Assembly (NCBI GenBank): GCA_943704425.1
Contig: CALSCP010001307.1
Span: 1 to 53,537 of the forward strand
Direction: 5' to 3'
Source of the DNA: Ministeria vibrans ATCC 50519
Lineage: Eukaryota > Protista > Filasterea
Length of the DNA: 53,537 bases
Position numbers and translations under genes: made by a program. This document shows, in pieces, positions 8,717-51,460 of this stretch; positions within the stretch are counted from its first letter, which is position 1; every line of letters starts with the position of its first letter. The notes under the pieces are model-generated. The model saw nothing but the letters and a program-made list of their open reading frames with translations, was not told the DNA's origin and did no database searches.

Positions 8717-10248
<1,532 letters not shown>

Positions 10249-12943: not shown

Positions 12944-13987
12944 ATGTTCTTCTTCTTATTCGCAGTTGCTATTGTGCTCAGCTCACCGGCTGCTCTTGGC
13001 GCTACTGCAAGCCAGGTGGTTGGTGTAAATGGTGACACGTACGTGGCGGCCGTCGTTGAATTCTCGCCTGAGATCTCGACCCAGCCGCTCTCACGCGCCG
13101 ATGCGGTTTCGCTCATGATGCGAAATCTGGCACAGTACCAAAGGTGGGCTGCCGATGCGGCAGCGCAGGGTGCCGACATCATTGTCTTCCCCGAAGACGG
13201 CCTCTACGGCCACGAGTTCCCCACACGCGACTCGATTTCGCCCTATCTGGAGGCGGTTCCCGCTGCGGGCGCCAACCTGTGCGTGTCGGGCAACCACAGC
13301 GCCACGCCCGTCGGCACGGCCCTCTCGTGCCTCGCCCGCGACACCCGCATGGTGGTGGTTGCCTGCTACGGCGAGTACGAGGCGTGCAGCGCGTGTGCGG
13401 ACGGACGCCGCCAGTTCAACACGCAGGTGGCGTTTGACGCAGACGGCACGACGCTTGCGCGCTACCGCAAGAGCCACCTCTACCTGAACGAGCCGCAATT
13501 CAACTCGCCCGTCGGCGGACCCGATCCGGCTGTGTTCACGCCCGTCGCCGCCAAGAACCTTGTGTCAGTGACGTTTGGCATGGCTATATGCTACGACATC
13601 ATGTACAAGCGCCCGGTCATGGACTACGTCATCCGCGACACCCGGCACATCGTTGTGAGCCACTGGTGGGTGAACACCCCGCCAAGCATGACAGCGACTA
13701 TGTACCACCAAGCATACGCACGCGAGCTCAACATTGTGCTGTTGGCAAGCAACGGCGTCGACCGTCACGCTGCCTGGAACAACTCCGGTGCGGGCATCTA
13801 CGCCGCAGGAGACATTCTCGCAACCTACTTCAACCCCACACAGAGTCCCCTCAACAAACTTCTCCTCGCCACAGTCCCTAAAGACGTAAGAGAATAAAAC
13901 GACCCAAAATCGTGTAACCATAACATATTCTCCGACATACGCAGTTTGGTGCGTCGCCAGTCGCAACTGACTGTAATCGAATCCCTC

Positions 13988-18613: not shown

Positions 18614-19156
18614 CAAACGAAAGAAAATGATTGATTGATTGTAGTACTACTAATTACTAAACGAGTAGTAAGTCGTTTTGATTTTTCAAACTTTGTTTGT
18701 ATATGATCTTGTTTTGACATTGAGTTATTTGAGTACGGAGTCGGGGGTACGGAGGTCGTAGTAGTGAGTACAGCTCTCGATTCTCTATTTATTTCTCTTA
18801 TATTTATTATTACTATGAATAATAAAACAATAATAATTATTAAGAAAACTGAAAAACTGCTGACATTCTTTAAAATTTTGAGTTCAAGACGTTTCAAATC
18901 GCAAAACTGTATTTTCCAAGTAAATATTAAATATTTTCTTCTAATTTCTTGTTGATATTTGATTTTTAAGGTGAAAGGAAAGACCGGTATGAAAAATGTT
19001 AATGAGAGGCTACTGAATAAAACATGGAGAAGGAAAAAAATTGGCTGGTTGACTGGATGCTTTCCTTGTTTAAGACTGAGTCGAGACGCGGGAATCACAA
19101 AAACATAGGTCATCTTTTTAATGCATTCACACAAACATAAAATAAACAAAGGCAAA

Positions 19157-22100
19157 CTATGACAACACACGCAACTGCACAGGCGACGCCAACAGAGGCC
19201 ACAACATGGTCTCGGAGACGCTCTCGGGGTAGGGCAAGCAGGCATCAAAGAAGAGCCAAGGACCCACAAAGCGCATCAGGAGGTACCACACAAAGAGCAC
19301 CGCAGCGACTACAAGTAGCCACAGTGACCAAGCACCCTTCCGCTTCGACCCGTCCAGCGCACCCACACTCCTCGTACTCGAAAAGCTCAACGCAAGCATC
19401 GGCAGACTCCACCAGTCAAAGTCGTACTGACTCACCAAATGCATCACAAGGCACACCGCAGCCACACGCAATAGCTTCTCAAGCCACACCGGGTGATTCG
19501 CCCCACTGCCAATCGTCATCATCTTCCGCGACGCAACTAGCATTTCCGCCTGTACACGCAGGCCCGCCAGTGTCTTCTCACACGTCAATTGACGTCGTTG
19601 TAGAGCGTCCACCTCACCCAACGTTCGCACAGCCAACGCATCTCTATCCCAATAGCAAATACAATACACCATCAGACACAACACACTCAATCTCTCATCA
19701 ACCCATTCCCTCACCTGAACCCATCGTAATAACTAAAGTCGCGTTCAGTCGCATCCACCTCGCTTCCTTCCCCTTCCATCAAAACAGTCTTCTCCAGTGC
19801 CGCTGCAACACGCCCCAGCGACTCCACCTCAGACGCGTCCTCGCCCGCCATTCGCATCTTTGCAATTTTGTTATGCAACGCAGACACTACCACCTGAAAA
19901 AGAGAAGGACAAGAATGAGGCAAATTCTCAAAGTACTCCCCCTCTCCGTCTTCGATCACTTTGTTTTTTCTCTCCCCACCCCTTTTCCTCTCTCAGTGTC
20001 TCTCAGGTTTATACCAAAATTTGTTCCTGAATGAGCATTCGCGCGCGCAACAAGTGCTGCACACGGTCTCCATTCACCTCAGCACCCTCTACAATGTCTC
20101 CCGCCGACGACAATTCCTCCAGACTCGATTGCACAAGCTCCTTAGTTTCCTTCCAACGCACAGTAAAACGAGCCACTAAAAAAAATGTAACAACATTAAT
20201 AATTATAATTATATTTTTACAGAATGATGAAAAATAATGAGGCAAAATACCCGAGAGACGAGCGGTGGCGTCTTCGATGCTGTCCACCTTTACTGAATCC
20301 GCGTCTTTTTGACAGAGCTTCAGCTGCTCTTCAATGTCCGACACCAGTTTGAGCACACGGTCTTGCTTTTGCAACCTGAATACAATATACAATAATAATA
20401 ATAATTAATAAACAATCTGTCCCTCTCTCACCCCTCTCGCTTACAATTCGTTCTCAGCGGCGCTCGTCTCTGAGCGATCCGTCACACTCGCAGTCTCAGC
20501 ACTCCTCAGCATTCCTTCAAGTCGCGACACCTCATTGCGCAGACCGCGCAACTCAAGCTCCTTCTCCTGCAAACTAGCCTCGCGTCGCTCGCGTGCACTC
20601 TTCTCCTTGTTATGCTCAGCAAGCGCATCGCGCCCCGCCGATTCCTTGCGCAGACACTCCTCTTCGGCTCGCATCAGACGCTCATTCGTGTCTTTCAATT
20701 CTTCTCGCAACCGCGCAATCTCACTCGCGGTCGCTGCACTCTCTGCCTCGCTTGTGCGAACCGCCGCGTCCAACTCACGCTTAAGGCTGTCCAGTCGCTC
20801 CTCAAGCGACATCTTCTCCTGCATAAGCAACACTTGCTTCTCTTCCCCTTCCTTCACACGCACGTTCAGCTCTTCGTTCGTTTCGTTCGCCGCATCCAAA
20901 TCGCGTTGCAACGAACTCACCACACTCGACATATCCCCACGCGNNNNNNNNNNNNNNNNNNNNNNNNNNNNNNNNNNNNNNNNNNNNNNNNNNNNNNNNN
21001 NNNNNNNNNNNNNNNNNNNNNNNNNNNNNNNNNNNNNAACACTTGCTTCTCTTCCCCTTCCTTCACACGCACGTTCAGCTCTTCGTTCGTTTCGTTCGCC
21101 GCATCCAAATCGCGTTGCAACGAACTCACCACACTCGACATATCCCCACGCGCCAGCTCAGCTTCAAGCTCGTCATTGCGCGCGCGCTGCAGCTCCAACT
21201 GTGCCAAATGTTGGCTCACCTCGTGTGCCATGTCACTGCGCAATCTCGCGTCCTCATCGCGCACCGACCGCAGCAGTTGCAGCTCCTCCTGCATCTTTGC
21301 AACGGCCTCTGTGTCCTCGGCCGGTGGACACGTGTGTGCGTCCAACTCACGCTGAAGATCATCCAGTCGCTCCTCAAGCAACTTCTTCTCCTGCGCAAGC
21401 AACAATTGCTTCTCTTCCCCTTCCTTCACACGCACGTTCAGCTCTTCGTTCGTTTCGTTCGCCGCATCCAAATCGCGTTGCAACGAACTCACCACACTCG
21501 ACATATCCCCACGCGCCAGCTCAGCTTCAAGCTCGTCATTGCGCGCGCGCTGCTGCTCCAACTGTGCCAAATGTTGGCTCACCTCGTGTGCCATGTCACT
21601 GCGCAATCTCGCGTCCTCATCGCGCACCGACCGCAGCAGTTGCAGCTCCTCCTGCATCTTTGCAACGGCCTCTGTGTCCTCGGCCGGTGGACACGTGTGT
21701 GCGTCCAACTCACGCTGAAGATCATCCAGTCGCTCCTCAAGCAACTTCTTCTCCTGCGCAAGCAACAATTGCTTCTCTTCCCCTTCCTTCACACGCACGT
21801 TCAGCTCTTCGTTCGTTTCGTTCGCCGCATCCAAATCGCGTTGCAACAAACTCACCACACTCGCCATATCCCCACGCGCCAGCTCAGCTTCAAGCTCGTC
21901 ATTGCGCGCGCGCTGCTGCTCCAACTGTGCCAAATGTTGGCTTATCTCGTGTGCCATGTCGCTGCGCAATCTCGCGTCCTCATCGCGCACCGACTGCAAC
22001 CGTTGTAGTTCCTCCTGCATCTTAGCAACGGCCTCTGTATCCTCGGCCGGTGGACACGTGTGTGCGCGCAATAGTCCAATCTCACGCTGGAGCTCTTCAA

Positions 22101-23969
22101 GTTGCGCCTCAGCACGACCTTGTTCTCCTCGAGCCTGTTCCACTGCGAGTTCATCGGCCTCGTGCGCCGCTCGCAACTCCTTCAACTCTTCCTCTAGTTC
22201 CCGCGACCCTTGCTCAATGGTCGCCAGTCGTTCGGTCACCTGCCGCCACTGCTCGTTGCGCTCCATCAGTGTCTGCTCGAGTTCCTCGCGCACCCGCTCA
22301 CCTTCTTCACACGCGTCCTTCAGACGCGCCACCTCACCCTCAAGCTTATCAATGCGCCCCGTGTCCACCACCACTGCTGGTTCAGGCAGCGGGCACACGT
22401 GTGCGCGCAATGACGCCAACTCATGCTCACACTCCTCGAGACGCAACGCGTTCGCCGCCAACTGTTCTTCCGCCAAGAGCTTCGCCTCCTCCAGCTCACT
22501 CACGCGACTCGCCAATTCCGCGGCCTCCTGGGCCAGCTCGCGCCGCAACTCGGCCTGTCGTGCATGCACATCGGAGCGATCAAGACCCGTCGCATCGTGC
22601 GAGAACTCGTCAATGTGTCGCATCGCCCGCTCGCGCTTGCGACGCGTCGACTCACTTGCTTGTGCTGCCAATCGCGAATAGTAGTTGTTGCCACCGGCAC
22701 CCCCCATGGACGAAGATGGAGGTGAGCCCAAAGAGTCGCCCTCAGTCATCAACGCGACCTCTTGCAGCTCGGCAAAAAGACTCTTGGGCGTGGCGGCGGC
22801 ACGCGGCGTCGACGCGGCCCTTGGTGATGCAGCAGTAGGGGCATCAGTGCTCTCGTCGTGCGCTCGACTCACGTGAACCTCTTCGCGCAGACTGGTATTC
22901 TCATCGCGGACCGTGTCCAGTTCGCTGCGCATCGCATCGAGCACTCGCTGTTGGTGTGCCGTGTCGGCACTCAGCTGGTGGTTTTGCGTCGACAGATCGA
23001 GCACAACGCTTGCGAGCTGATCCCGATCGTCTTGCACTGTGCTGAGTGTTTGGAGTTCCTGGCGCAGTGCGCGACCCTCCGCCTCAAGTTCACGCACACG
23101 TGCCAGGGCTCGCTCCGATGCGGCGCGCACGTCCTGAACGTCGTCGAGTTGCATGCGCAGCTCCATCAACTCGGCCTGCGCTCGTTCGGCGCCCGTCTTC
23201 ATTTGGTCGCGTTCACGTCGCGCCCGATGCAACGACTGTGTAGTCTTCTCGTGTGCAGACTGTTCGCTGGCGAGAAGACGCCGTGCCAAGGCGAGGTCGT
23301 CGCGAAGACGACGCCCTTCGTCGCGAGCGCGTTGCGACGCCGTCACCACACGACGCATCTCCTCCAGCTCGTCCATCAGCTGCTGCTGCGCCTGCTCGCT
23401 CTCCTGAAGCTGTGCCTCAAGTCGTCGCTCGCGTGCTGCCGATCGTTCGCGCTCCACACGGCGCGGCGTTGCCACTGTGTCGCCCGAATAGTGTGAACTG
23501 CGCGTCGGCGACACAACGCCACGAATCGTACTGGGCGAACCTAGAGACGCATCGCTCCTGCTCGATCCTGTGCGTTTGTCCGGCGTGCTCTGCTGCGTCC
23601 TGTCGACAGTCTCGATGCCCCAGCGGCCTCCGCGGAGTCCTTTTTTAGGGGTAAAAAAAAAAAAAAAAACATTATATTTTTGAAAAACACTTTTCAAAAA
23701 CACAACAGAAACACTCAAAGCGTACCGTGTGCTTCAAGCCATGCGCGCATACCCACGTGAAAATCGTCCCATTCGACCATACCGTACTCGTCGGCGGGCA
23801 AGAGACGCTCTAGCGCTCCCAAATCGGCCGCTTCCTGCACGCTCGACAAATACTCAAAGACAGTCGCTTTCAAAACGGCCGTTGCAGCACCCACAAGCCC
23901 CTCGCCGCCCCCTTCCTTCTCCGCACACAGCATAAATAGCCGACGGATCGTCATGTCGAGGTCGTCCAT
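19157..23969 (-). CDS. Large EF-hand-like / coiled-coil / C-terminal TM protein; KASH5/LRMP-like architecture; multi-exon, interrupted by an N gap
   Basis: N-terminal exon (IRRLFMLC...VFEYL...LERLLP...GMVEWDDFHVGMRAWL) is EF-hand-pair-like; very long heptad region; SLFAEL motif; C-terminal TM WSLWLLVVAAVLFVWYLLM plus short tail. That it is coding is secure; the family call is inference. Confidence 0.65.
20829..22070. repeat. Coding tandem repeat, 363 bp (121 aa) unit, ~3 copies
   Basis: Unit starts at 21038, 21401 and 21764 (spacing 363); first two copies nearly identical; partial copy at 20829-20943 before the gap. Confidence 0.95.
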
Positions 23970-24238
23970 GCTGAACAAGCGGACGTCGCGCGACCTGTCA
24001 AAATAATAATAATAATTATTATGAATATTTGACAGTTGGATTTCAATTTTGGAATGAGGAATTCTCCATGTCCGCTTTACGCTTTGACAGGTGCCTCTCT
24101 TATTCCTCACTAGTCACTAATGTCAAACTCCTGTCACTCCATCGAGTGTTGATCGTGTCATCGCCACAATTCAGCATTTTGAGTGGCGGATTGAAATGAA
24201 TTTAATGAGTTAATGAGTTCACTTCTCTTTCATCACTA

Positions 24239-27200
24239 ATGGCAAACCTCGAGGGCAACTCCTCCCAAGTAGGAGGTCCTCACCTTCAGCGGCTGGCCAC
24301 CGTTGACGTGGCAGATCTCGTTGGCCGTAAGTTGTTTCTGTGTTTTTTCTGTCCGCTCTCATTCGACCCTGCACTTTTCTTTTCAATGTAGCGGACAGCC
24401 TTGAGGCTAGCGGCGCGGGCGACGACATGTGGTGGCTCAACGAGGCGCTTCTGTCCCTGACTCACGACGCGCAACGACTGCTGGTTGCCACAAACGACCA
24501 GTTTCTGCTGTTGAGTCCGGACGACTCAGTCACGACCCAAACTGTCTTTCGCGTAACTCTCCGGCATATCAAGCGTATTCATCCTGCTCACACACACACA
24601 CACACACGCCCCATTTGATCTCTCCTTGCCAACACACAGGTGGCGTGCGGCTCAGACGACGCCGACGCCTTTGGCTCAGTCACCAGTGCGCGAGTCGTAG
24701 CGACAGCGCAACCACACGACGTCTCGTCGCCCAAGACCCTCTACATCCTCATTCTCGGCTATGCCAATGGTTGGCTCCGAATCCTTGACGACCATGCAAA
24801 GGTAAAGTATAAACCAAACCATATATTAAAATTAATATTATACTATCTTGTTTTGCTCACAGCCGTTTATGGCACAACAACTGTTTCCCGAGTCGGACCA
24901 AGTCGCACAGGTGCGTGTCAGTGGTGCTGGCGACATTGTGGTACTTAGCAGTGACGGCAAGACAGTGGCTATTGTGGACGCGACCGCAGTGCACGAAACG
25001 GCGCTCGAGCGTCACACTGCCTACGGGGGTCAACCGTGTCTCATTGCGCACCGCAAATGGGCACTGGATCGCCACAAGTACGTCAGCGATGTGTGCATGC
25101 GCGTCACCCATGATATGACCACGAGCTCCTTTGAGGAGCTTGTCTACCGCGGTGGTGGACTCCACTCGCACGCAGCGAGCATTGTGGCAGTGGGCGAACA
25201 GCCGTGTGTCGCCGTATACGGCACAGACCGACGCAAACGCGACGGGGCCGTTGCGAGCGTCGGTGAACTTGCCAAGTCGGTTGCAAAGACGCTTACGAGC
25301 TCGGTGTTCAGCTGGCTGTCGGGTCCCGCGGCAACTGCGGCTGCAGCAGTGGCTGCGGGTGGAGGCGACGCAGACGCCGCCACGGAACTCATGGCGGGAG
25401 ACGCTGTCGAGCTGCAGGCACCCGATCGTGTAGCGGCCTCTGTGCGGTTCCGTGATGCCCGCCGACATGTGATGGGTGTGTGGGCGTCGCCGTGTGGGGA
25501 GTATGCGGCGACAAGTGACTCATTGGGTCGCGTGACGCTACTTGAAATGCGCACGCTGACTGTCTTGCGAGTGTGGAAAGGATATCGCGACGCCGAGTGC
25601 GGCTGGGTAACGGCACACGACCAGCAGCCGGGTGGCGTACGTCGCTCTGTCGACTACCTTATCATCTTTGCAGTGCGTCGGGGTCTTCTTGAGGCATGGC
25701 ATGCACACACGCGTGTCCGTGTGTGGGCACGTGACGTCGGCAAACAGGCCCGTTTGCTCTCGTGCGACTCGCTCCTGCTCGGCGAACACGGCGCCCACTG
25801 CTATCTGTTGCAGGCAGACAGTTGCACTCTTTCACGCATCGTCGTTCCGTACCACTGCGCCTCACAGGCTGGCGGTGCCACGGCCCGTGATAATCATTTG
25901 CTTGCCACAGCACGCTCGCTCATCAACGACGTCGCGGACCCCGCCATGCTCACGGCCGTCACGGCTGAACTCTCCTCGTCAACGTCGCTGCGTCGTCTTG
26001 CCTCCATGTGCATCGTAGCCAACCTCACCGCACCCGCACTTGCTCTCGTTCTCACAGCAGTCCGCGACCGTCTCGCCGCCCTTGACCCTGTCGCCCACGC
26101 CACTGACATCCAAGTGGTCGACGACCGTCGTGCGCTTCTTCAAGTCTACATCTCGGTTGCCGACTTCTTTCCCTCCTCGTTTTCCGCTCCTTCTACGCCC
26201 ACCTCGCAGCCGCCCAACCCACGTCCCATTATCGCGTCGCTGCTCCTTCCCTCTCATGCGGATAATAGTGAGAGTGAGAGCGCACCTCCTGGCGACGACG
26301 AGACAATTGGCTCGTCGTACGCCACTCTTATTGAGCGCGCCCTCTCACGCCCTCCCCTTCCTTCTTCCCCCTCCTCCTTTCCTTCTGCACCTCACTCGAT
26401 TGTCACTGACCTCTCTGCAGCTTCATTCCTTGAGTGTTTTCCCGCACGTTCACCGGGTTCACTTCAAATCACACTTGCCGACGCGCAACTGAGTCGTCTT
26501 GCGCGTTTCCTCTTTGGTGCCACACTTCTCGACCTTTGCCCCGTGTCGCAAATGGCCCGCACTCTTCGCTCACTTTCACTCTCGCCCAATGCTGTCGCGC
26601 GTCTCGTAGGCGCCTTTTTCTTTGACACGCCCCTTCAAGAGCTCTTCCGCTCAGTCGAGCACTGGAAACGACTCACCTTTGAGTACCCAGAGCTGCTTGA
26701 CAACGAGACGGTGCGCGAACAACTCGGTCTTGTCTGTGCGTCCACCACCCATCTGACATCGGCTCTGCTCCTCTTGATACTCACTCGGTCTGCGAGTGCC
26801 AACGCAACAGCCGCATCAAATGTGGCCATGAGACAAACGTGTGATCGAGTCGCGTCGGCGCTTGCTCTGGATCTTCTGACGACTACTTCGACTAGTAGTG
26901 GCGCAGTGCTGACGGTTGAGCAGCTGATGCGCACGCCGGGACGAGCAGCGGGAGCTCTTGCGCGTCGTACGCTGCGCACTCGCAATGAAGACGATGCGAC
27001 CACCAAGGCACTTCTTGAGCGTCACTGGCCCATCCACAGCGCACCGCCTCTCGTTGCGGCACTCTGTGCTCGCGGTCTTGTGCGTCGGTGGGCCGAACGA
27101 CCCGCCGAGCGCATGGAAATCCTTGAAATGGCCATTCCATATTTGCGAGCGTGTCGTGATGCCAAGGCAGTGGCATTGTGTGCGCGTGTCTCGGTGCGAC

Positions 27201-28468
27201 TGTGGCACGTTCACCTGAGACCCATTGTGAGCTCGGTGTTGCGAGCCATGGCGAAAACATCACGTGTGCTGCGCGACCGTCAGTGTGTGCGCGTCTGTGG
27301 TCTCACCCTGCCTCTTGTACAGCGCCTTCTCGCTGCCGCTGTGTTTGTGCTGCGCTTCGGCCATGCACTGCCGCGACAGTATGACGGCGACGCCTGGTAC
27401 ACCTACGGCCTGCCCACTCGCCTGTGGCAGACTACCTGGTCGAGCAGTCTTGCCGACAGCAACGACATGCTGCTGGCCAAAGCTCTGCTCGACGTGGAGC
27501 GCACGCGTGGCCGTGCGTCACTCCATGGCCAGGCGGCCGTTGAGTGGCAGCTCACCATCTGTCTCACTGCCTGGCTTGCTTTTGCTGTGTCGCTCGAGCA
27601 CGCTCCCCTTGTGAAACTTGTGGGGCGGCACGTTGACGACGTGCTCGACAGCAACGTTGACGTGCTCCTTGACGAACCAGTGCGTGTTGCCGTTGCTGGG
27701 CAGAGCACGAGCTGTCCCACTCGCCGTGCATGGATGGAGCTCCTTGAACGGGCTACGGGTGTTGCCGTGTTTCTTTGCAGTGTCAAGCATAATCGTCTTC
27801 CTCGCTCATTTGCCACGCTATGCGGTTCACCACCCACCGAACAGCAATCTTCTCGTCGTCGTCGCTTCCCCTCACTTGGCAGTGACGACGCAGCCGACGC
27901 TGCTTTCGACGTATGCTTCTGGCTTAATCTCCACTTGTCTCTGCCAACACGCCCGCTTGTTGCAAGTGCTGTCACCATGGCCGTGGTACGCGCACACGAC
28001 GCTGAGGCAGACGAGGTGATTGCCAAGGCAACGCAACGGAGCAGTGAGGTTGTCGAATTGGAATCGAGTTGTGAAGATGACGACGGAATTGACAAAACAC
28101 AGCTTGGTAATGCACTGCTCTGTGTAACCGCCCGTCGAGTGGCTCAGCTGCTCGACTCGGCTGCCAGCCAAAGCGCATATGCCCGTCGTGTGTCGCTCCT
28201 CCCCGTGCCCCTTTACGACTGGATCACACACACCGCAGAGCAAGTCAACGAACAACCACAGCAACAGCAGCCTCAACCGCCCTCCGACACACAGCATTGG
28301 CAACGGCTCCCTCCTGAGTACGCTCCCCTCAGCGACATTCCCTCCAGCGATGCCGTTGCCACAGCCGCAGCCGCGTCGCTTGCCACCACCACCCTCGAGC
28401 TCATCCCAACCAATGATCGCGCAAAGGCACTCGCGTCCATTCTTCAGGACTTTCGTTCTGTACAATAA
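24239..28468 (+). CDS. RAB3GAP2: Rab3 GTPase-activating protein non-catalytic subunit (Rab18 GEF subunit)
   Basis: LILGYANGWLRI; FRDARRH....WASPCGEYAATSDSLGRVTLLE......LRVWKGYRDAECGW; YLIIFAVRRGLLEAW are RAB3GAP2_N signatures; last exon ~3.6 kb. Confidence 0.9.
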
Positions 28469-28999: not shown

Positions 29000-30721
29000 T
29001 AATAAAATTATAATTATAATCATAATAATGAGAGAGACAATCATTATTATTGGTTATGTTATTGCACGTGTAAGTTTACCACTTGAACAACTTCAAGTCG
29101 ATCGCGGTGACTTGATGTGAGTGACGACAATCGAACGTTGTCTGAGAATGGAGGGTTGATCATCTCTTCGGCTCGCGCGGAGGGGGAAGGGGCAGGAGAG
29201 CCAGTGCGAGGAGAGAGCGGCAGAGACCCCTGAGGAGAAGTGCTGTTGTCCCGGGTGAGAGTGCGACGAGAAGAGAAGGAGGAGGAGGAGCGAAGGCGAG
29301 GGAGATCGTCGCGGGAGAGCGTCGAGGTGACGGGCGGTGAGAGTAAATCGTCGCTTGATGACTGTCCTTGTTGTTGATGATCATAATGCAGCTCATTAAG
29401 TTGTGAAGCAAGGGTGTGTGGTGAGCGCGAGGCGGGCGAGCAAGGGGGAGGAGAAGGAGAGAGCGAGGGAACAGAGCCTTGTGAAAGAAAAGTGACGCGC
29501 GTCACTCGTTTGCCCTGTCAAAAAAAGAGGAAATGTGATAGGGAAAGAGGCAGAGAAAGATAATGAGAGAGAGAAAAAGAAAGAAAGAGAAAGAGCAAAA
29601 GAAAGTGTAAGAGAACGTGAGAAAGAAACGGTGATACAGAGAAAAAAGGGAGAAAGACACAAAGTGAGAGAAAGAGATAGAGAGTTTGTGCGTGTAGTGG
29701 GATTGTTGTGTCACCTCTGCGTCAAGAAACGGAGAAATTCGTTCGAAAGTGGGTCGTTCTGAGACAGACCGGTTGAGGCAGGCGCGCAAAAGAGACGAGT
29801 AGGGCTCGGCAAGGTGGTCAGGAACTTCGACGGGTTGTTCTATGTGAGAAAAGGGAGAGGGTTTAGAGAGAGGGGAGGGAAAAGGGAAGTGACGGACCAA
29901 GAAGGCGAAAAAGATGAAGAGGGTCAGTGATTCTGGCGGTGGGGATAAAGCGAGTGCGTAGGAGAGTCTCCCAGGCAACGACGCCAAAGCTGTAGACGTC
30001 TGACGCAGTGGTGACGATGGCAGAGTGTGTCGCAGTAGAAGTAGCAGTAGTAGGAGGAGTGGCGGGGGTGGTAGTAGAAGGAGGAGCAGCACTTGCAGTA
30101 GTAGAAGAAGTAGTAGTAGCAGCAGTTGTAGTGGTGAGGGGAGTGAGAGGCAGGGGGGGGGTAAGGGATTCTGATGGGGAGAGTGGTGAGAGAGGCGAGT
30201 CTGCCGAGGGAGTGCCTAGACCGGAGAAGATGAGTTCGGGAGCGGTGGAGGCGAGGAAGGAGAAGGTGTCGGATTCGCTGTGGCGCAGATGGTGTGAGTT
30301 ACGGCGCACAAGACGACGGGGGTGGTTCTCGCGAAGTGCAGAGGAGCCAGAGGTGTGGCGGGGACGTTTGCCTGTTGAAGCGTGGGCTAAGGGATGGATT
30401 GTCGGTGAAGAATGGTTAAACTGACGAGTCGCTATGAGAGGGTGAGGGATGGTGACGGAGGAAGGGAGAGGGGAGGCAGAGGATGGAGAGTGGAAGGCAG
30501 TTGGGGTGGAGGGCGGTGCAGACGCAAATGCCCGCGTGCTGCTCAGCAGATTGCCAATGCGTGCTGTGTAGTCTGACGCCACCTATTTTCATATTTATCA
30601 AGAGAGAGCGCGAGAAGGAGATGAAAGGGAAGAAGAAAGAAACAAAGTGATAGAGAGAGAAGAAAAACACAAAGAAAAAAAGTGATAGATATTGTGTGTC
30701 AGTCCGTTGTTAAATTAATAC

Positions 30722-33700: not shown

Positions 33701-34948
33701 ATTTCCGGTGCGTTCCAAAAAAGAGACCCAATAACATTGGGAGCGGAACTGGACAGTCCTAACCCACTCGCTTCGCTCTAAAGACGACCCAGAGTGAAAG
33801 TTTTATAAATTCAGAAGAAAAAATAATTATTATTAGTATATTTTGTGGTGTTAGGGCTCGGTGTTGTAGATTGGAGATTGGAGTTTGAGTGTACCTTTTC
33901 ATCGACTTGTTTCGGTTGCATAAGATCAGTCAGACCAAAATCAGACACTTTAATAGTGAGGTTGTCGTCCACCAGAAGATTGGGAGATTTGAGGTCTAAA
34001 GCAGCGACAAGTTGAGTCTCTCAGTCTCTCTCACTTTTCTCTCTTCTCTATCACCTCTGTGAAGGAATGGAGGCTTGTGAGCGTGCAAATAGGTCATTCC
34101 GTTGCACACGTCACGCATCATTCCCAGACGAAGGACCATTGGGAGTTCTACTTCGTCATTGAGGAGCACTATTGGAAAACACACACCATAATCATGACGG
34201 GGCACTCAGCGTCTCTGTGTGCAAACCTTCGTGGAGTGACCCTTTGTTCATAAGCTCCGTAATAATCATGAGATCGGGCGGAGCAATGCAAGCACCCATG
34301 AAGAGCACCACATTCGGGTGGCGGAGACTCGCCATCACTTGCGCTTCGCGGTTGAAGTCATCCAGAACACGATTGTCCAGAGGAAGCGAAAGCCGCAACA
34401 GTTTCTTGACGGCCACACGTGAGCCTCTAAATCGCCCCACATAGACAATTCCTGGCAATGACCAAGCATGGGGAGCGCGGGCCGGCGCACAAGAAGACGT
34501 GAGTAGAGCGCAACGGCGATAATATACAAATTTGGTCGTTGAAATTTTGCGTTTCTCTCTCTCACCGTATGAGCCTCGTCCAATCACGTTAAGCAACTCA
34601 ATATCCTCTTTAAAGATCCTAAAAATGGGTTGGGGTGTAAGCGGGGCTATCGGAGGGAACAGGGAGCCACACAGACCGATCTGGAGCAGGTTCTACTTTT
34701 TTGGTTCTCTTACTGTTCGCCTAAAACCCGCATGGCCATCCTACACGCCGCAAAACACACACAACATGATTAGGTGTACGCCAGACATGTCGTCGAGACA
34801 GGTACCCTTCCTCAACTTCCTTGACGGTCGCTGACAAGTGGCGACGGTGTTTCCGGCGTAAGTACCAGCAACTGATCGCCATGGCCACGACAAACGCCAC
34901 TGCGGCGATCACAATGCCAACAATGATCTCGTTGGCCAGCGTCGGCAT
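28520..34948 (-). CDS. Single-TM protein with TKL kinase, degenerate class III nucleotidyl cyclase and C-terminal pseudokinase; many exons (3' end either 28796 or 28520)
   Basis: TM IIVGIVIAAVAFVVAMAISCWYL-RRKHRR; kinase 1 IGRGSYG/VAVKK/HR|DLKSPN/DFG/APE/DAYAFG; middle GGFEVSNSTDRIWLIF...IKIAIHSG...RQVEYSG...GQIL; kinase 2 HPNL..FYGVC/YLHS.KPPVIHHQL/IGNL/APE/SDVYSFG/ERPTF. Confidence 0.85.
32944..32985 (+). repeat. Interstitial telomere-type repeat (TTAGGG)7, intronic
   Basis: Seven perfect copies plus TTAGGGTTAG at 33011-33020, inside a kinase-gene intron. Confidence 0.95.
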
Positions 34949-35246: not shown

Positions 35247-36809
35247 ATGGTAAACGTAACGCTTGCTTTGACTATTCACACCACCACCTAGGCATTTACT
35301 CTTCATCTCTTCTTTTAGCACTGTGTCTTTTGTGGACGAAACGCGTTTGATTCGCGCGTCGATTTTGAACAGCACTCGCGCCAGTGCGCTCTCGAGAGCG
35401 CTCGTGAGTTTGACGATTCAGAGTCTCCTCCTGGCAGCCCCCCGGCACCGTTTGCCACTTGCCAGGCGTCTCTGGTCGACTCGTCGTCGTTTGTGAAAAG
35501 TGCCAAACGTACCACGTCAGACCGAGTATTTGGTCAGTCGTCGCCCTTTATCGGCTCCACCAAAGTCAAGTACGGCAAAAAGCGGAGTACCGGTAAGTTT
35601 TTTCTTGCTTTTTCTATCAAAATAATTATGACTTTCTAACAACGTTTTGTGACAGCTCCTCCCATCACAAGCCATGTTGATTCTCCGTCGCCTCTCGTCG
35701 ACTCGCTTGTCACCGTTGTGCCTGATAGTCAAGGGGCCGAGTCGGAGGAAGGAGACGTCGTGTGCCCTTGGACGAGAGAGGGCGAACTTGTGTCGCCTCC
35801 GTCTCTCGCACATCAGGGCTCTCTTGAGTCTTTAGAGCTCGGCTGCGGCTCTCAAGAAGAGCGCCCCATTGCTTTATCGCAGTCCACAGCACCCACTGCC
35901 ACTATTGTTGCAGCAGATGAAGTCACACCACCGTCACAACCACCGCCACAGCACACTACAAGAAGACGAAGCACACGAAATCAGAAACCACTCAGCGTGA
36001 AGCTGGAACCCGCCTCGGATGCAACAATAGCTCCACGTACAAGCAAAAAGAGGAAGACTCCACAGCAAGACGTGACGGAGGAGACACCCACCACACGACA
36101 CGAACCAACAACTAAAAAAAGAAGGACCTCGCTACAACAACAACGGCAACAACAACAACAACAACATGCACAATCCACTCGACGCTCTACTACCACCGCT
36201 CCACCGCTGCAATGCGAGAAGATTGTCACTCAACACAAGGAGAATGTCCCATCGCCACGAAAGAAGCGCGGTCTTGCCATCAAAGAAAAAGAAAAGCAAA
36301 GCATATGTCTCACGGGTAGCACTGACCCAGCTGCCGATCGTGAAGTGCTTGCTGCAGCCGTTAAGCATCTAGGCTGTTTTCAAGGTGGTATAGTGAGCAC
36401 TGTAGACGCGTCAACGACACACATTGTCGTGTGCTCTCCCGCTGCTACACCACGACGCACTCTCAATCTCCTCCACGCACTCTCTCGCAACTGTGTCGTT
36501 CTGCCATTTGAATGGGTCATGGAGAGCATTGAGAACGAAGCATGGCTCCCCACTCAGCCCTACCGGCTTACCATGGCGGTCCACGAGCCTCGTTTTTTTG
36601 CCAATCGTGCCTTCTTTATTGCCTCTCGCACCGCCCCTTCTCCAGCGGAACTCCGTTTGCTCATCCTTTCGCTTGGTGGTCGCATTGTTCACTCGCACCG
36701 TCAAGCGGACTGCTTTGTGGGCAGCCCAACGCAGTTTCCCTCACGTGGCGGCAACAGCTGCGAGTGTATATCGCCATCACGTCTTCTCGATGCAATTTTG
36801 CCGGCGTAG
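35247..36809 (+). CDS. Microcephalin (MCPH1)-like tandem-BRCT protein with N-terminal C2HC zinc finger
   Basis: ATG|intron 35250-35318|HCVFCGRNAFDSRVDFEQHSRQC; C-terminal TTHIVV...RTLNLLHAL...C.VLPFEWVMESIE...W...PY and FFA...FFIA....PSPAELRLLILSLGGRI......AD.FVG match MCPH1 BRCT2/3. Confidence 0.75.
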
Positions 36810-37060: not shown

Positions 37061-38637
<1,577 letters not shown>

Positions 38638-39196: not shown

Positions 39197-42105
39197 TTAT
39201 ACAAAAGAGTCATTTGTGATACTCGGCTGGAGCCGCTCAACGTGACGGCGAGTGAGCGTCAGTTGGCTCAAAGGCAGTTTGTGTCGTTGTTGTTGTTGTT
39301 GTGCGGGAGCCAGATTGAACGAGAGATTCTCCAGATCTGGCAAACTGATTTGATCTTCATCGTGAGTCCACCTAGAGGAGTGTTCTTCTTCTCCCATCTC
39401 CTCTTCCAGCACTTCAATTTCACCGCAGTCCTCAAACTCCATCTTTGACTCATTGTTTCTCCCAATGTCCTCCATCTCCACACTCCCATGTTCCATAACC
39501 ACTGACTCACTCTCTCGAGCTACCTCTGCCTTCGCCTCTGCCTCTGATTCATCCACCACTCCATCGACGTCCCATTGCACTAGCTGCAACCTGTGCAGTG
39601 TCAGCGCCGATGCCCACAGCGACGTCGGAGACTTGCCCGACGTCGATGAGGCAACCGATGAGGAGTGCGTGGACGCCCGAGAGGCATACTGGACGTTGTG
39701 CAGTGGCTGAAGCGGCGTAAGCGCAGGTACACTTGCGTCTGGTGTTTGTTGTGCGGTAAACAGAGGAAGTCCCGGGTGTTCGTGAAGTGGGGTGAGTTCA
39801 AGCGGGACAATATTGCGAAAGAGGGGAGTAAATGGGCGCGCGCTGAGTGGAGTGAGTGCGGGGGGTATGGAAGACTGCATGGGTGTGCCGCGCTCGTGAG
39901 CAAGTGAAAGGGCGTCCAACGAAGGGACGCAGCGCATCGAGACGCTCTTGTTAGTGTTGTGGAACGAGTGCTGCGAGAGCGCATCTAGTGAGGGCGCACA
40001 CTGTGAGAGCACATCCAGGGAGGGCGCACGTCGAGACCAGCTGCTCATGTTATGTTGCCGTTGTTGCTGATGTTGCTGTGAAGGTTGATCGACAAGCGAC
40101 TGCTCGTTCATCGATGCGAGTCGATCAAGGGAAGGCAATGGACAGGTCGTGTCAAGAAGAAGCGACTGCACACGTGACGACACGTGTGACGACACTCGCT
40201 GTTCGTTCGACTCTTCGTCCTTCACTGTTGTCGTTGTCACGCGCGAGTGTTCAAGAGTCGCCTCCTCAATGGCTCCAAGACTCGGACAGTTGTCAAGCTC
40301 GCGCAAACGTCGCGAAAGAGACCGCTCGTGACCTTTCATGATCATCAGTGGGTTTTCCATCATAAAAGGCTCAGAGCGACGCAGGACGGGCGACTCACAG
40401 AACCCAACGGTCATGCGAGTACGTGCCACTGCAGCCGGCACAGGCGCACCTGCAACCAACAGACCATGGTGAGTACTTGACGACGACGACGACTGTGAGG
40501 ACGCAGACGAGCGACGACGACGGCTCTTGAACCACCATGCCCCAATCCCATGGGTGGAAGTTTCCTCTTGCTCCTGCTGCTGCTGCTGCTGCTGCTGCAC
40601 TCTCACACTGTTGTCGCTTGTGCTGCTGCTCTGTCGACTTGCAGCACTCGTCCCCCCCGCTATAGTGCTCGTGCCTTCAGCACTAGAACTGTCCCGTGGC
40701 TGTCGTGGCACCGCGGGGTGCGCCACCACCGGCGACGCAAACACACCACCGCCGTCTTCACTCATACGCGATCCACGTAGACTGCGCAGCGAGAAGGACC
40801 CGCCACGCGTGTAAAAGTAGCTAAAGAAGGCGGATTTGCGTCCACCATACCGTTGTTGTTGCTGTTGGTGCGGGTTTGGTTGGAGCTGCAGTTCCGCCAT
40901 GAGCTGTGTGCTGTGTCTGCGACGGCTCTGGCGTTCGTGTCGTCCGCGCTCGCGTAAATCGTGCATGCGCTGACGACGACGACGCATTGACGGCCGGAAC
41001 GTGCTGACGGCCGTCGAGAGTGCCTGGCGGATTTTGCTGTTGCGCACAAAGTTGAAGGCAATGAACACTCCCTGAAGAGTGACAGTGAGCACAAAGAGCC
41101 AGGCAGAGAAGGCATTTTGGGGCGCAAGGACGACCAGAATGCCCAAGAGCCAGGGCAGTGAGAGAAGTAAAAAGAGGGTGAAGCACACCTTAAGGTGGTC
41201 GCGAAAGAGTTGCAACCGAGAGCGGTCCGTGCTTGAGGGTGGTGCGGTGCCAGCGGCCGCAAGAGACTCGGTGGAGCGCTTTTGCTTGCGCTGACGAGAG
41301 TTGCGCTGAAGGCGCAGCACAGAGCGCATCATGAGCACCAGTACAATTGTGTTGAAGATCATGATGAGCAAGGCAGGCACCAAGAAGCTGAGAATAAGAC
41401 CGAGCTGAGAGGCAATAAAACACACGCCCGGCGTTTCATGAGTGCCGTACGCACGACTGGCGGAACCCGACGCCGCCGCCGCATACACAATGATGTAAGT
41501 GAGCACAATGACTGCAGGCACCACAAGGCAAACGGCAAGAAGGTGGCGTGCTTTGCCGGGCCGTGCGTCCTCCAGGCGCACCATAGCCGTGTAGATTTTG
41601 CCGGCATGCACCAGCGACACACAGAACTGGACAAGTAGGAAGTAGTGCAGTGCAAGGCCGGTGAAGAAACAGCCGCCCGCGGGGGTTGCGATCGCCGCAC
41701 TATCTCCGTTCATAGAAGCTGTGGACAAGGGTGCCTTACCTCGAGCAGCGAGAAAGAATATTTGAACTTTAAATAAAGTCAGTCGACGAAACGATTAATT
41801 TTCAAATATGTACCGGCAAGAATTGAAGCGGCTAGTGCGACCAAGAGACGCACAGGGACCGATCGGAGGTTGTTCTGGTTGCAAATGAAGGCGTAGATGA
41901 TCAGAACGAGAACGCATGTGACGATGGAGAAGGTGCTGCAGACGGTGGAGGCAACGGCGAGTGCGGGTGATGAGTACGCCGAAGAGTCGACGAGAACCGC
42001 AAATGTGCGGTTCGACGACGCTGTCGAGCCCTCGTCTAGAGTGCTGTTGACTGCTGATGTCGACTGGACAAGCGCCAGAGCAAGGGCGAGGGCCAGGAGA
42101 GTCAT
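39197..42105 (-). CDS. Adhesion/secretin-class (7tm_2) GPCR with short ectodomain and ~600-aa disordered C-tail; 2 exons
   Basis: Signal peptide; TM1 SIVTCVLVLIIY; GCFFTGLALHYFLLVQF; CFI...LILSFLVPALLIMIFN; LFLLLSLPWLLG; WLFVLTVTLQGVFI...RNSKIR. Confidence 0.85.
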
Positions 42106-47988: not shown

Positions 47989-50900
47989 ATGCCTGAGGGA
48001 GACGAACGTCTTCTTTTGGGAGACCGTAGACGCTCGGGAGGAGCCAGCTGGTCGGCAATCTGCGGACGAGCTGTGCAGCGACACAGCCGAGCGCTCATTG
48101 TCGCGGCTGTCGTGGTTGTCATAGTCGTCGCCACTACTGCGGGCGTTCTCGCCTCCAAATCGAGCTCGTCGTCGTCGTCGCAGCCCTGGACCAACTCCAG
48201 ACTATCGGGTGATGTGTGGCCTCAGGCGTACACGCTCTCGATGAGTCCCGACGTTCTGTAAGTTGAGACAACGCAAAAAGAAAGAAAAAAACGCGTGTTT
48301 TTTGTGTGGTGACAATCTCTTACTCTCACGCGACAGGAACTCAACGTTCACCGGACACGTCGCCATTAACGCCACCTTTGTTGTGCCCACGACGTCAATC
48401 GTTTTGCAGTCGCTGGGCCTCGATATCGGCGCTGTGCGGGTCAGTCACAGCGGTCAAGATGTGCAAGTCGACAGCGTGTTTCTCTACCCTGAGGTAACAG
48501 CGGGAAAGACGCCCACGCCACTCCCACTCCCGCTTTCGAGCCCCCTCTCTGTGCCTCCAAGACTGTGCTGACTCTCTTCTTGCCTTCAGAACGAGTTTCT
48601 GGTCATCCAACTGCACCAGACACAGCCCAGTGGGGTGGACTATGTGATCGACATTGACTTTGCTGGCTCGCTCGATCAGCCCACTCTTGCCGGATTCTAC
48701 CGCAGCAGCTACGTGAACAGCACCGGCGACACCGTTTACCTGGCCACCACGCAGTTCGAGCCGACGGATGCACGTCGTGCCTTCCCTTGCTTTGACGAGC
48801 CCAGCTTCAAGGCGCAGTTCTTCATCTCGCTCACCGTCGCTGACAACCAAGACTACGTTGTGCTGAGCAACATGCCCACCAAGGGCGCCGTCGAACCTCT
48901 GCCCAACTCCCTTGAACGCTGGACCTTTGAAGGCACTCCCCTCATGTCAACCTACCTCGTCGCCTTCATCGTATGTGACTTTGGCAGCATTGAAACAGTC
49001 AGCTCAACCGGCATTCAAGTGCGCGTGTGGGCCCCCAAAGACATTGTTCAAGTCCAGGGCGCCCTTGCCCTCAACTCGTCTGCCGAAATCCTGTCTTTCT
49101 ACGAGGCATTCTTCGATCAGCCTTTCGTTCTCCCTAAAATGGACCTTATTGCCATTCCGGATTTTGCTGCGGGTGCAATGGAAAACTGGGGTCTTGTCAC
49201 CGTAAGAAGAAGAGGAGGAGGAGAAGAAGAAAGACTTTTCCAAACTTTTCTCGTTGTGTAGTATCGTGAAACAGCCGTTCTGTGGGACCCGAGCGAAGGC
49301 TCAAGTGCAGCCAAACAGCGCGTGGTCGTTGTCATTGCACACGAACTGGCCCACCAGTGGTTTGGTAACCTTGTGACTATGAAATGGTATTGCTAATAAT
49401 AATTGTTATACTATAGTTCATTAATCACTTCCACAAACGCTTCTTTTTTTAGGTGGAATGAACTGTGGCTCAACGAAGGATTTGCTTCGTTTACCGAGTA
49501 CATTGGCACTGAGTCGGTCTTTCCGTCGTGGGAAATGCAACAGCAATTTCTTCTCGATGACTATGGTCCCGCTCTGTCCACCGACTCACTGAATACGTCT
49601 CATCCAATCAATATGACTGTCTCAACACCAAACGATATTAATGGACTCTTTGACAGTATCACCTACGAAAAGTACGAAAACAGAGAGACAGAGAGGAGAT
49701 TGAAACAAAGTGATGAGAGAGAGTATTAAACAAAATGATAGCGAGAGAAGATTGAAGATTAAACAAAGTGATAGAGAGAGAAAATTGAACAAAATAATAG
49801 AGCGAGAATATTAAACAAAATAAGAGAGAGAAAAAATATATTAATTAATAATAATTTTTTTTATTATTATTATTATTTTTGATGCAGAGGAGCCGCTATG
49901 ATTCGAATGCTCGAGGGAATTATTGGAAAAGCAGTGTTCCTCACTGGCATTCGCGCGTACATTAAAGAGTACGCCTACAGCAATGCGCAGACAACGCAGC
50001 TGTGGGCGAGTCTGCAGAAGGCCGCTGATGATGCGGGGGTGAACGTGAACATTGCGGAGACGATGAACTCGTGGATCACACGCGCGGGCTACCCAGTGTA
50101 AGTGATCACTCTTTCCCAACCAAATTCATCTTAGCGTCTTGTGTTGTTGATAGACTCACTGTGACGGGCGGTGCTGATGGTGAAGTGACTCAAGAGCGTT
50201 TCTTGTTGCCTGCGAGTGCAGTGAATCCTGACGAAGGGCTTTTGTGGGACGTCTACTTCACGTATGAGACGCAACGGGGCGCACCGGGCTCGTTTCAGCT
50301 CACCGACGCACAGTCGACTGTCCCTTTTGCGGACTATGATGTAGCGCGTGACGGATGGATCAAGGGCAACGTCAACGAGGCGTCCTTCTACCGCACCAAC
50401 TACGCTGATGTGGGCGTTTGGCAACTGCTTGCAGACCAACTCCTTATGAACATGTCCGTTTTCACTGTTGCAGATCGCACAGGGATTGTCTCGGATGTGT
50501 TTGCGCTCGGCCGTGCCGGTGACACGGACATGCTTGCTGCGCTTAATGTGTCACGCTACCTCATCAACGAAGTCGAGTATGTCCCGTACATCACTGCAAT
50601 TTCAGGGTAAGAGTAGGATGTTTTTTTTTTTCATCTGACCCGTTGATTCACGCATTTTCTTATGTTTTACTTTTGTTTCGTTCCCTTTATTTAGACTGTC
50701 GTACACTGAGTTGATGCTGCGCGTCACTCCTTCCTTTGGCTTGTTCAGTTCGTTTATGAAGAAGGTGTTGACACCCCTGACTGACTCGCTTGGTTTTGGC
50801 TCGGGCGATTCTCTGTCGCATACGCAGCGACTGTTGCGTGCCGATGTGGCTAGCGTGGCGTCGAGCTTTGGTGTACCTTCGGCTGTCGGCAACTGCTCGG

Positions 50901-51460
50901 CGCTCTTTGCTGCCTTTATGGCAGACCCTCAAGCGAATCCAGTCACCCCCGACTTGCGTGCAGCTGTGTACTCGACGGGAGTGCGCCAGGGCGGCGAGGC
51001 AGCATGGGACTTTATCTGGTCGGTGTACGAAACGACACAGGTGGCGTCGGAGCAGATTGTTGCTCTGCATGCGCTTGGGCAGGCCGTTGAGCCTTGGCTG
51101 CTCAACCGCTATCTGTATCGTTCCATTGACGGTTCAATTCGCTCGCAGGACCGTCGCACTGTGATTGACTCGGTGGCCGGCACGGCCATTGGCGAGCCGC
51201 TTGCCTGGCAATTTGTCAAGACCAACTGGGACCTGCTGGTGGAGCAGAGTGGCTTTGCCATGGCAGGTGTGGTGGGTCGTGTCACTAAAGGATTCAACAC
51301 ACTCAGCCAGCAGCAGGAGGTCTCGGGCTTCTTCACAGGTCGCAATCTGGGCAGTATGGCCTCATCCATTGCGAGTGCTGTCGAGACCATTGGTGCCAAC
51401 ATTGTGTGGATGAAGGAAAACGAGGCAAAAATTGACGCCTGGCTCACAGTGAACCAATAA
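47989..51460 (+). CDS. M1 family aminopeptidase N-like type II membrane zinc peptidase; multi-exon
   Basis: N-terminal TM; GFYRSSY; [20 protein letters not shown]; [15 protein letters not shown]|YRE; [16 protein letters not shown]; LWLNEGFA; FDSITYEK|G; ERAP1-like C-terminal domain. Confidence 0.95.
49700..49832. repeat. Imperfect ~25-30-bp minisatellite (AAACAAA[G/A]TGATAGAGAGA core), ~5 copies, intronic
   Basis: Directly visible in an aminopeptidase intron. Confidence 0.8.

Follow-up and report, generated by a model that had tools for sequence, protein, structure and literature searches.

Dynein activating adaptors share a plan in which a domain at the N-terminus, binding the light intermediate chain (LIC) of dynein, is followed by a long coiled coil with HBS1, a random coil and a Spindly motif (PMC13547401). 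The coiled coil ahead of the Spindly motif averages ~260 residues, and two residues of human Spindly, S256 and F258, are critical (PMC5379953). The single EF-hand pair of KASH5 does not bind calcium, and L77, F97 and M101 are needed for LIC binding (PMC9242646); in the human protein the EF-hands and coiled coil occupy residues 1-349 and a putative Spindly motif occupies residues 371-376 (PMC10071310). Zebrafish Fue/Lrmp, which binds dynein, joins a KASH5-like N-terminal half of ~343 residues to an LRMP C-terminal half (PMC3787381). Here we describe a gene on the minus strand of a 53,537-nt stretch of DNA from Ministeria vibrans (contig CALSCP010001307.1; this whole stretch is called the window below). 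We consider its product, with a probability of roughly 40%, to be a candidate tail-anchored dynein-dynactin adaptor of an orphan family, which would be anchored in the endoplasmic reticulum (ER) or the outer nuclear membrane.

The gene and its architecture are real. One intact gene of six exons runs from 23969 to 19157 and, with the overlap at an assembly gap merged, encodes ~1,370 amino acids (aa) as assembled. All five introns are GT-AG and 69-184 nt long, with consistent donors, acceptors and phases and GC contents of 0.17-0.47 (0.17-0.42 in the four AT-rich introns, 0.47 in intron 4), compared with 0.52-0.61 in the exons. The original prediction, which had proposed a KASH5/LRMP-like nuclear-envelope dynein adaptor, listed an N-terminal EF-hand-like pair, a ~200 aa coiled coil followed by KSLFAELQE, further coiled coil, a set of motifs near the C-terminal end, and a transmembrane (TM) segment with a tail; exon translations place all five where it had put them, all on the minus strand and within a single coherent gene, whose structure is as follows.

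23726-23969, minus strand: exon 1, with its ATG at 23969, 81 codons plus one base, donor G/GTACGC, GC 0.58.
23640-23725, minus strand: intron 1, 86 nt, GC 0.24, with a 17-T tract and GT...AG ends.
20445-23639, minus strand: exon 2, a single long open frame that contains the assembly gap, with continuity given by the independent scaffold L002.
20251-20375, minus strand: exon 3, with its splice sites and phases.
20078-20175, minus strand: exon 4, with its splice sites; both of its two differences from L002 are at third codon positions.
19715-19893, minus strand: exon 5, whose last residues are ...EVDATERDFSYYDGF(R); it shares 45% identity with the related contig L001 (E = 3e-12), where the intron has the same position.
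19157-19643, minus strand: last exon, open in frame throughout, with the stop at 19157-19159.

The 81 aa of exon 1 end in ...GMVEWDDFHVGMRAWLEAH, and its frame meets a stop three codons beyond the donor. Intron 1 is the sole donor/acceptor pair that brings exon 1 into frame with the long open reading frame (ORF), and its acceptor (AAG) is weak. Exon 2 has its first Met at residue 87, and the 86 codons ahead of it are open and GC-rich, so that an upstream start is needed. At the other end of the gene, an intron that the original prediction had placed between its exons 6 and 7 was rejected: the stretch at 19350-19435 has an exon-like GC content (0.57) and is in frame, so the two are one exon, and it is identical in the sequence L003 and, for its coding part, in L002. 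The TM segment thus lies in the single last exon and not in a separate one. Two plus-strand ORFs rich in S, P, R and A (20535-22025, 496 aa; 19159-20034, 291 aa) were also set aside, as antisense mirror ORFs taken to be by-products of codon bias. Runs resembling (AAT)n occur at 23970-24030, 20380-20420, 20180-20240 and 18800-18850 (introns 2 and 3 and flanking intergenic DNA), as against a GC content of ~58% in the exons.

The N-terminal part of the product has the layout of a dynein adaptor, as had been proposed: a head, a linker, a long helix, a coil and a SLFAEL helix follow one another in AlphaFold2 (AF2) models, in the order of the published plan (PMC13547401, PMC10071310). The model of the first 346 aa of exon 2 shows a disordered stretch at residues 1-57, a helix at 58-260, a coil, a helix at 285-292 (KSLFAELQ), a second coil and a helix from 317. 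Confidence is given below as the predicted local distance difference test (pLDDT) score, and protein numbering is exon-2 numbering plus 82 (exon 1 and the split codon).

23736-23798, minus strand: EF-loop-like stretch and exit helix, PADEYGMVEWDDF HVGMRAWL (exon-1 residues 58-78), the best site for the PROSITE EF-hand loop pattern.
23467-23639, minus strand: linker rich in S, T, R and P (exon-2 residues 1-57), disordered, with AF2 pLDDT below 50 and no secondary structure.
22858-23466, minus strand: first coiled coil (CC1), one helix of 203 residues that covers exon-2 residues 58-260 (protein residues ~140-342), with AF2 pLDDT above 90 along its whole length.
23134-23433, minus strand: part of CC1 that aligns with the Pfam family KASH_CCD (CC1 residues 10-109 against positions 23-122 of the 191-position profile), sub-threshold.
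22759-22785, minus strand: Spindly-like motif KSLFAELQE (exon-2 residues 285-293), in a P/S/T-rich break after CC1.

The original claim of a ~200 aa coiled coil followed by KSLFAELQE held, with SLFAEL at exactly 22765-22782 (protein residues 368-373). Exon-2 residues 59-266 (208 aa) are free of proline and have a high heptad score, and an uninterrupted coiled coil of the ~200-260 residues expected in adaptors between the head and the Spindly motif (PMC5379953) is therefore present. KSLFAELQE begins 25 residues past the end of the 203-residue helix and is modelled as a short isolated helix between disordered stretches. Its SLFAE holds the S, the F and the E, and SLFAEL is the only LFxE in the protein and the only L[FA]xE outside a long helix.

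Exon 1 may encode a small four-helix domain, possibly a degenerate EF-hand pair. In its single-sequence AF2 model (mean pLDDT 57.7), helices are predicted at residues 4-20, 23-43, 50-56 and 67-80, and the PADEYGMVEWDDF site has two mismatches, at loop positions 1 and 5, to the PROSITE EF-hand loop pattern. The best Foldseek template-modelling scores, 0.41-0.43, were to S100 EF-hand pairs (0.43 for S100P), which we do not count as evidence because the model is poor. The spacing of VEWDDFHVGMRAWL fits that of F97, L98 and M101 in what is presumably the matching KASH5 helix, and we treat this as a lead only. Four predicted helices and one EF-loop-like site thus stand from the EF-hand-like pair that had been proposed, and the pair as such drew no support from EF-hand_9, the PDB or Foldseek.

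Profile searches, like all the gene searches reported here, were run exon by exon or with pieces of exons. When the first coiled coil was taken as a query by itself, KASH_CCD (PF14662) came up, ranking first among 24,736 Pfam families for CC1 (E = 7.4e-4, 20.0 bits), in a colinear alignment over 100 residues, and ranked first again for the first half of CC1 alone (E = 7.9e-3, 16.6 bits; next family at 0.17); it was absent from the matches of three other coiled-coil pieces of the same protein. Rank and position alone are suggestive.

At its C-terminus, the protein carries the membrane anchor that the original prediction had described, in the form of one strong hydrophobic segment followed by a tail of 35 aa (earlier ~38).

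19265-19333, minus strand: TM segment, AWSLWLLVVAAVLFVWYLLMRFV (last-exon residues 104-126), with a Kyte-Doolittle 19-residue mean of up to 2.32.
19160-19264, minus strand: C-terminal tail, 35 aa, GPWLFFDACLPYPESVSETMLWPLLASPVQLRVLS.

Across all exon pieces, no hydrophobic run of TM length besides AWSLWLLVVAAVLFVWYLLMRFV is sustained; a further 19-residue stretch reaches 1.68 but contains charged residues. A second TM segment at VWLEKLLRVAAVCLVMHLV was considered and rejected, its uncharged core being only ~11 residues. The segment has SKRKG on its N-terminal side and acidic residues after it, and KRK before a single TM segment with acidic residues behind it fits a type II tail anchor. The tail starts GPWLFF and ends ...MLWPLLASPVQLRVLS, with VQLRVLS as its last residues and V at position -7. 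As had been remarked before, the canonical PPPX is missing: the last four residues are R-V-L-S, with no proline among them.

The most economical reading of these features is that the first ~375 residues are built like an EF-hand-type dynein-dynactin adaptor, with a rod that is probably dimeric. Such a protein would consist of a small helical head, a flexible linker of ~60 residues, the 203-residue helix, a short coil and the SLFAEL helix, and would continue through a repeated coiled-coil spacer and a conserved juxtamembrane region into one C-terminal membrane helix, with the 35-residue tail across the membrane. It would act in the manner of KASH5 or zebrafish Fue, with its head holding the dynein light-intermediate-chain helix, its long helix running along dynactin, its SLFAEL helix in contact with the dynactin pointed end, and its anchor tying the motor to the ER or the outer nuclear membrane.

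Comparison with described proteins sets out both the likeness and its limits. With KASH5 the protein shares a helical head, a random coil, a ~200-residue coiled coil and a Spindly motif ~20-25 residues further on, at 368-373 compared with 371-376 in KASH5 (PMC10071310, PMC9242646); both also have a single C-terminal TM segment with a short tail, and KASH_CCD is the top family for the first half of the long helix. It differs from KASH5 in having no EF-hand_9 match, a KASH_CCD score far below the cut-off, a tail without PPPX and ~900 extra residues, made up of repeated coiled coil and the conserved juxtamembrane region, between the motif and the membrane. Fue likewise combines a KASH5-like N-terminal half, a further C-terminal region and a membrane anchor in one protein, which is the design that the original prediction had proposed, but it has a recognisable LRMP C-terminal half and a KASH sequence, whereas the window protein has no MRVI1, KASH or LRMP-family matches. 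LRMP/JAW1/IRAG2 (KASH6) and MRVI1/IRAG1 resemble it as tail-anchored proteins of the ER and nuclear envelope in which a coiled coil precedes the anchor and a short tail lies in the lumen (PMC10827754). However, no sequence or profile similarity to them was detected, and human LRMP ends NGPPPV, as read from a reverse primer, and its C-terminus enters the SUN pocket, in contrast to the VQLRVLS of the window tail (PMC3787381, PMC10827754). CRACR2a, Rab11-FIP3 and NINL show the same succession of head, coiled coil, coil and Spindly motif (PMC13547401). Their heads are recognisable EF-hand pairs, whereas the ~80 aa head described here, with its four predicted helices, has no EF-hand profile or PDB match, and a Rab11-FIP3-like family appears among the coiled-coil profile matches only at E = 0.7-4.4. 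ZYG-12 of C. elegans and the fungal Kms1/Csm4-type proteins are also membrane-anchored coiled-coil links between the nuclear envelope, dynein and microtubules, in lineages without KASH5 (PMC3787381, PMC7227075).

The region that precedes the anchor is the best conserved part of the protein. Exons 5 and 6 carry EVDATERDFSYYDGFR, DALAVRTLGEVDALQRRQ (DALAV), QAEML and VMHL, so that the C-terminal motifs of the original prediction were recovered, and the last exon contains the following block.

19589-19627, minus strand: most conserved block, RTLGEVDALQRRQ, with 13/13 residues identical in the relative P0003, encoded on L001 (298-480).

This juxtamembrane block has no known family match. A phmmer search with the C-terminal 161 aa against 1.84 billion representative proteins returned three proteins and no LRMP, MRVI1 or KASH5. 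One of the three (P0001) is the window's own ORF; another (P0002) was rejected as a relative, being a retroelement-like protein full of repeats whose match is made up of 11 short stretches. The third (P0003), a 78-aa fragment from a related species, is the sole true relative and is encoded on L001, a 690-bp contig of NCBI assembly GCA_025491055.1. Identity to L001 is 48% for exon 6, and L001 keeps the intron between the counterparts of exons 5 and 6 at the same place, with the donor directly after the counterpart of ...VMHL. Both exons, with the same intron position, are conserved in a second species, and the juxtamembrane region is therefore constrained in at least two species. At L001 positions 283-300, the exon-6 counterpart starts with one extra T, which puts it out of frame with exon 5; the cause is either a genuine frameshift or an error of sequencing, the assembly being very fragmented. 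The L001 exon that follows the exon-6 equivalent was rejected as a counterpart of the window's pre-TM stretch, with no BLASTP alignment between them. Scanning JGI metagenomes for the conserved exon-6 alignment produced 484 matches to the pattern and no relative, and the identical ORF was limited to one ENA metagenome scaffold and one Logan assembly.

Between the Spindly-like motif and the juxtamembrane region lies the further coiled coil that had been predicted, part of which is a 363-bp tandem array interrupted by one of the three N runs in the window (9160-9168, 20944-21037 and 38013-38020).

21040-22689, minus strand: second coiled coil and repeated coiled-coil spacer, interrupted at every H[TV]CP[PL].
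21038-22066, minus strand: tandem array of a 363-bp (121-aa) unit, 2.8 copies at 97% identity (Tandem Repeats Finder), extending to the left of the gap.
20944-21037, no strand: assembly gap of 94 N inside the tandem array.

The gap as written breaks the minus-strand frame (94 = 3x31+1). An identical stretch of 115 bp flanks it on either side, at 20829-20943 and at 21038-21152, and deletion of the N run together with one copy of this overlap (209 bases) brings the frames into register. The independent metagenome scaffold L002 (ENA ERZ23497376; 99.5% identity to the window) matches 22287-21338 in one alignment and 20943-19001 in the next, the two alignments overlapping by 178 bases, and its translation is a single open frame that passes from ...EELEQTLMERNEQW... 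through two HTCPP units and then the divergent last unit, as far as ...SAAENEL. Once the overlap is merged, the window has exactly one 363-bp unit more than L002, and over 20756-18770 it is 100% identical to L003. The 115-bp overlap and the open frame of L002 show that the two sides of the gap are continuous and in frame, with the unit count holding only as assembled.

Short-read assembly is prone to collapsing such arrays. The window has three HTCPP breaks (21038-22066 and 20766-20943) compared with two in L002 (1-950), a difference in copy number of the 121-aa unit that is either a real polymorphism or a short-read repeat collapse. The H[TV]CP[PL] breaks fall at exon-2 residues 413-420, 526-530, 647-651 and 768-772 (~22378-22401, 22048-22062, 21685-21699 and 21322-21336), and this cysteine-bearing sequence at each coiled-coil break could be a regular hinge, a disulphide or a metal site.

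Several results weigh against the protein being a dynein-dynactin adaptor. Matches to the EF-hand loop pattern with two or fewer mismatches occurred in 18.5% of 20,000 shuffles of exon 1 (1.1% for a stricter pattern of the second half of the loop, which was picked after viewing the sequence). A Pfam hmmscan of exon 1 returned no family at E <= 1 or E <= 10, EF-hand_9 (PF14658) included, a phmmer search of the PDB found no EF-hand chain at E <= 10, and Foldseek comparison of the exon 1 model with the PDB gave nothing at E <= 0.001, for a model whose pLDDT is only 57.7. KASH_CCD reached only 16.6-20 bits compared with a cut-off of 43.3 bits, and the second half of CC1 matches it only non-colinearly (E = 0.14). 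Three control queries from other coiled-coil parts of the protein gave E = 6.4e-4, 8.4e-5 and 7.6e-3 with families that are clearly unrelated, so the KASH_CCD score is within the noise of this protein. The minimal Spindly pattern, L[FA]xE, is found 7 times in exon 2. Homologue searches with exon 1 and with exon-2 residues 1-340, together with the JGI scan, gave no relative covering the head, SLFAEL or the tail. Finally, the junction between exons 1 and 2 is a prediction from the sequence.

The wider searches gave no better footing for the family assignment in the original prediction. EF-hand families, MRVI1 (PF05781) and KASH (PF10541) were absent from the Pfam-A hmmscan matches of the exon pieces at E <= 1 and E <= 10. 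For MRVI1, to which a weak similarity had been claimed, neither Pfam nor phmmer detected any: exons 3, 4, 5 and 6/7 (the last exon) had no match at E <= 1, nor had exons 5 and 6/7 at E <= 10. The TM segment with the tail had no Pfam KASH match and no KASH peptide or chain in the PDB at E <= 10; PDB phmmer searches with exon 1, the C-terminal 161 aa, the first 346 aa of exon 2, and the TM segment with the tail were blank or gave nothing meaningful; and Rfam had no match in the window. The LWPFTRLR that the original prediction gave for LRMP does not fit W534, L537, E538, H539 and L541 of human KASH6 (PMC10827754). Taking the HMMER results against EF-hand_9, MRVI1, KASH and KASH_CCD with the lack of any profile or structural match for the N-terminal exon (Pfam, PDB phmmer, Foldseek) or the tail (Pfam, PDB phmmer), membership in the KASH5, LRMP/MRVI1 or KASH family is not established.

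An explanation about as likely as the adaptor reading is that the gene encodes a tail-anchored coiled-coil protein specific to its lineage, which would be a tether or scaffold of golgin, ER or organelle type, have no role with dynein and resemble adaptors by chance. Its EF-like loop, its SLFAEL string and the KASH_CCD rank would then be coincidences within a rod that is long, of low complexity and quick to evolve. All family tests being negative or sub-threshold would fit such a protein, as would the equal E-values with which its own coiled-coil pieces match unrelated families. The motifs are short and were noticed post hoc: taken singly they are not significant, and a Spindly-type motif does follow the coiled coil, but a motif this short is weak evidence alone. 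Moreover, the best conservation is in the juxtamembrane block and not in the head, and the near-identical tandem units point to a fast turnover of the rod. Chance sits less easily with the head, linker, 203-residue helix, coil and S-L-F-A-E helix standing in KASH5 order and near KASH5 residue numbers (PMC10071310), and with KASH_CCD heading the 24,736 families in the expected segment alone. A further reading of the same layout, that a eukaryote outside the vertebrates, and possibly outside the animals, has here a genuine but very divergent homologue of Fue/KASH5, the transmembrane dynein adaptor, seems to us unlikely.

It is improbable that the protein is a true KASH protein of the LINC complex, homologous to Fue, KASH5 or LRMP, whose divergent tail would bind the organism's own SUN protein, which lies outside the window, in the perinuclear space. 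The single TM segment at the extreme C-terminal end, with its 35-aa tail, has the general topology of KASH proteins, in which ~30 aa are lumenal (PMC10827754), the N-terminal half is KASH5-like in layout, and Fue shows that such a half and an LRMP-like C-terminal half are compatible in one protein (PMC3787381). Against this, the ending of KASH tails is [PATHQL]PP[QTVFILM] in animals and xVPT or PLPT in plants (PMC4050730), neither of which fits RVLS. In all solved SUN complexes, the KASH C-terminus inserts in a SUN pocket and position -7 is Tyr, or His in KASH6 (PMC10827754), compared with V here. The tail topology thus fits KASH and the signature does not; given also the absence of Pfam KASH, MRVI1 and PDB KASH matches and of LRMP, MRVI1 and KASH5 among the phmmer results, a SUN-KASH link is not supported. 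A chimeric gene model, in which exon 1 is separate or untranslated and translation starts at an internal Met, or in which the array has been misassembled across two loci, appears very improbable. A join of exons 1 and 2 that is predicted from sequence, the weak acceptor of intron 1, the availability of a Met at residue 87 and the position of the gap within near-identical repeats would all allow it. They are opposed by the 86 open, GC-rich codons before that Met, by the GC content of exon 1 (0.58), its stop three codons past the donor and the 17-T tract in the only in-frame junction, by the single open frame in which L002 links the array to the 3' exons, and by the complete identity of L003 over 20756-18770.

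The window is gene-dense, with closely packed genes. Head-to-head with the coiled-coil gene lies a Rab3GAP2-like gene on the plus strand (24239-28468; Pfam RAB3GAP2_N, 3.8e-44, and RAB3GAP2_C, 5.4e-9), and the ~270 bp between the two ATGs resemble a common bidirectional promoter region. An 842-aa open exon on the minus strand (39200-41725) encodes a secretin/adhesion-type seven-transmembrane domain (7tm_2, 1.1e-15), with ~600 residues after the seven-transmembrane domain that have no family match. M1 aminopeptidase exons (Peptidase_M1_N, Peptidase_M1, ERAP1_C) are found on the plus strand at 48638-49258, 50074-50607 and 50714-51457. A protein-kinase exon lies on the minus strand at 34195-34593 (PK_Tyr_Ser-Thr, 6.9e-13), and a weaker, sub-threshold PK_Tyr_Ser-Thr match at 29866-30579 (minus strand) could come from that gene or from another. 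Other exons encode a carbon-nitrogen hydrolase (12947-13894, plus strand), a BRCT-pair protein (35652-36806, plus strand) and a PH-domain protein (52064-53206, minus strand).

Other lineages do the same job as KASH5 with unrelated proteins, ZYG-12 and Kms1 among them. The head of ZYG-12 is of the Hook type, and some KASH-like proteins of the ZYG-12 and Kms1/Csm4 type have divergent tails. If a distant and little-sampled eukaryote has this plan, the design either is older than vertebrates or evolved twice, and either origin bears on how nuclei and the ER are coupled to microtubule motors. If the protein is a true homologue, the combination of an EF-hand-type head, a ~200-residue coiled coil, a Spindly motif and a membrane anchor would predate vertebrates, and the original tail may have lacked PPPX, binding SUN otherwise or anchoring the protein to the ER and not to the LINC complex. 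As a testable candidate and not a result, the gene would offer a compact test case for the essential features of an adaptor.

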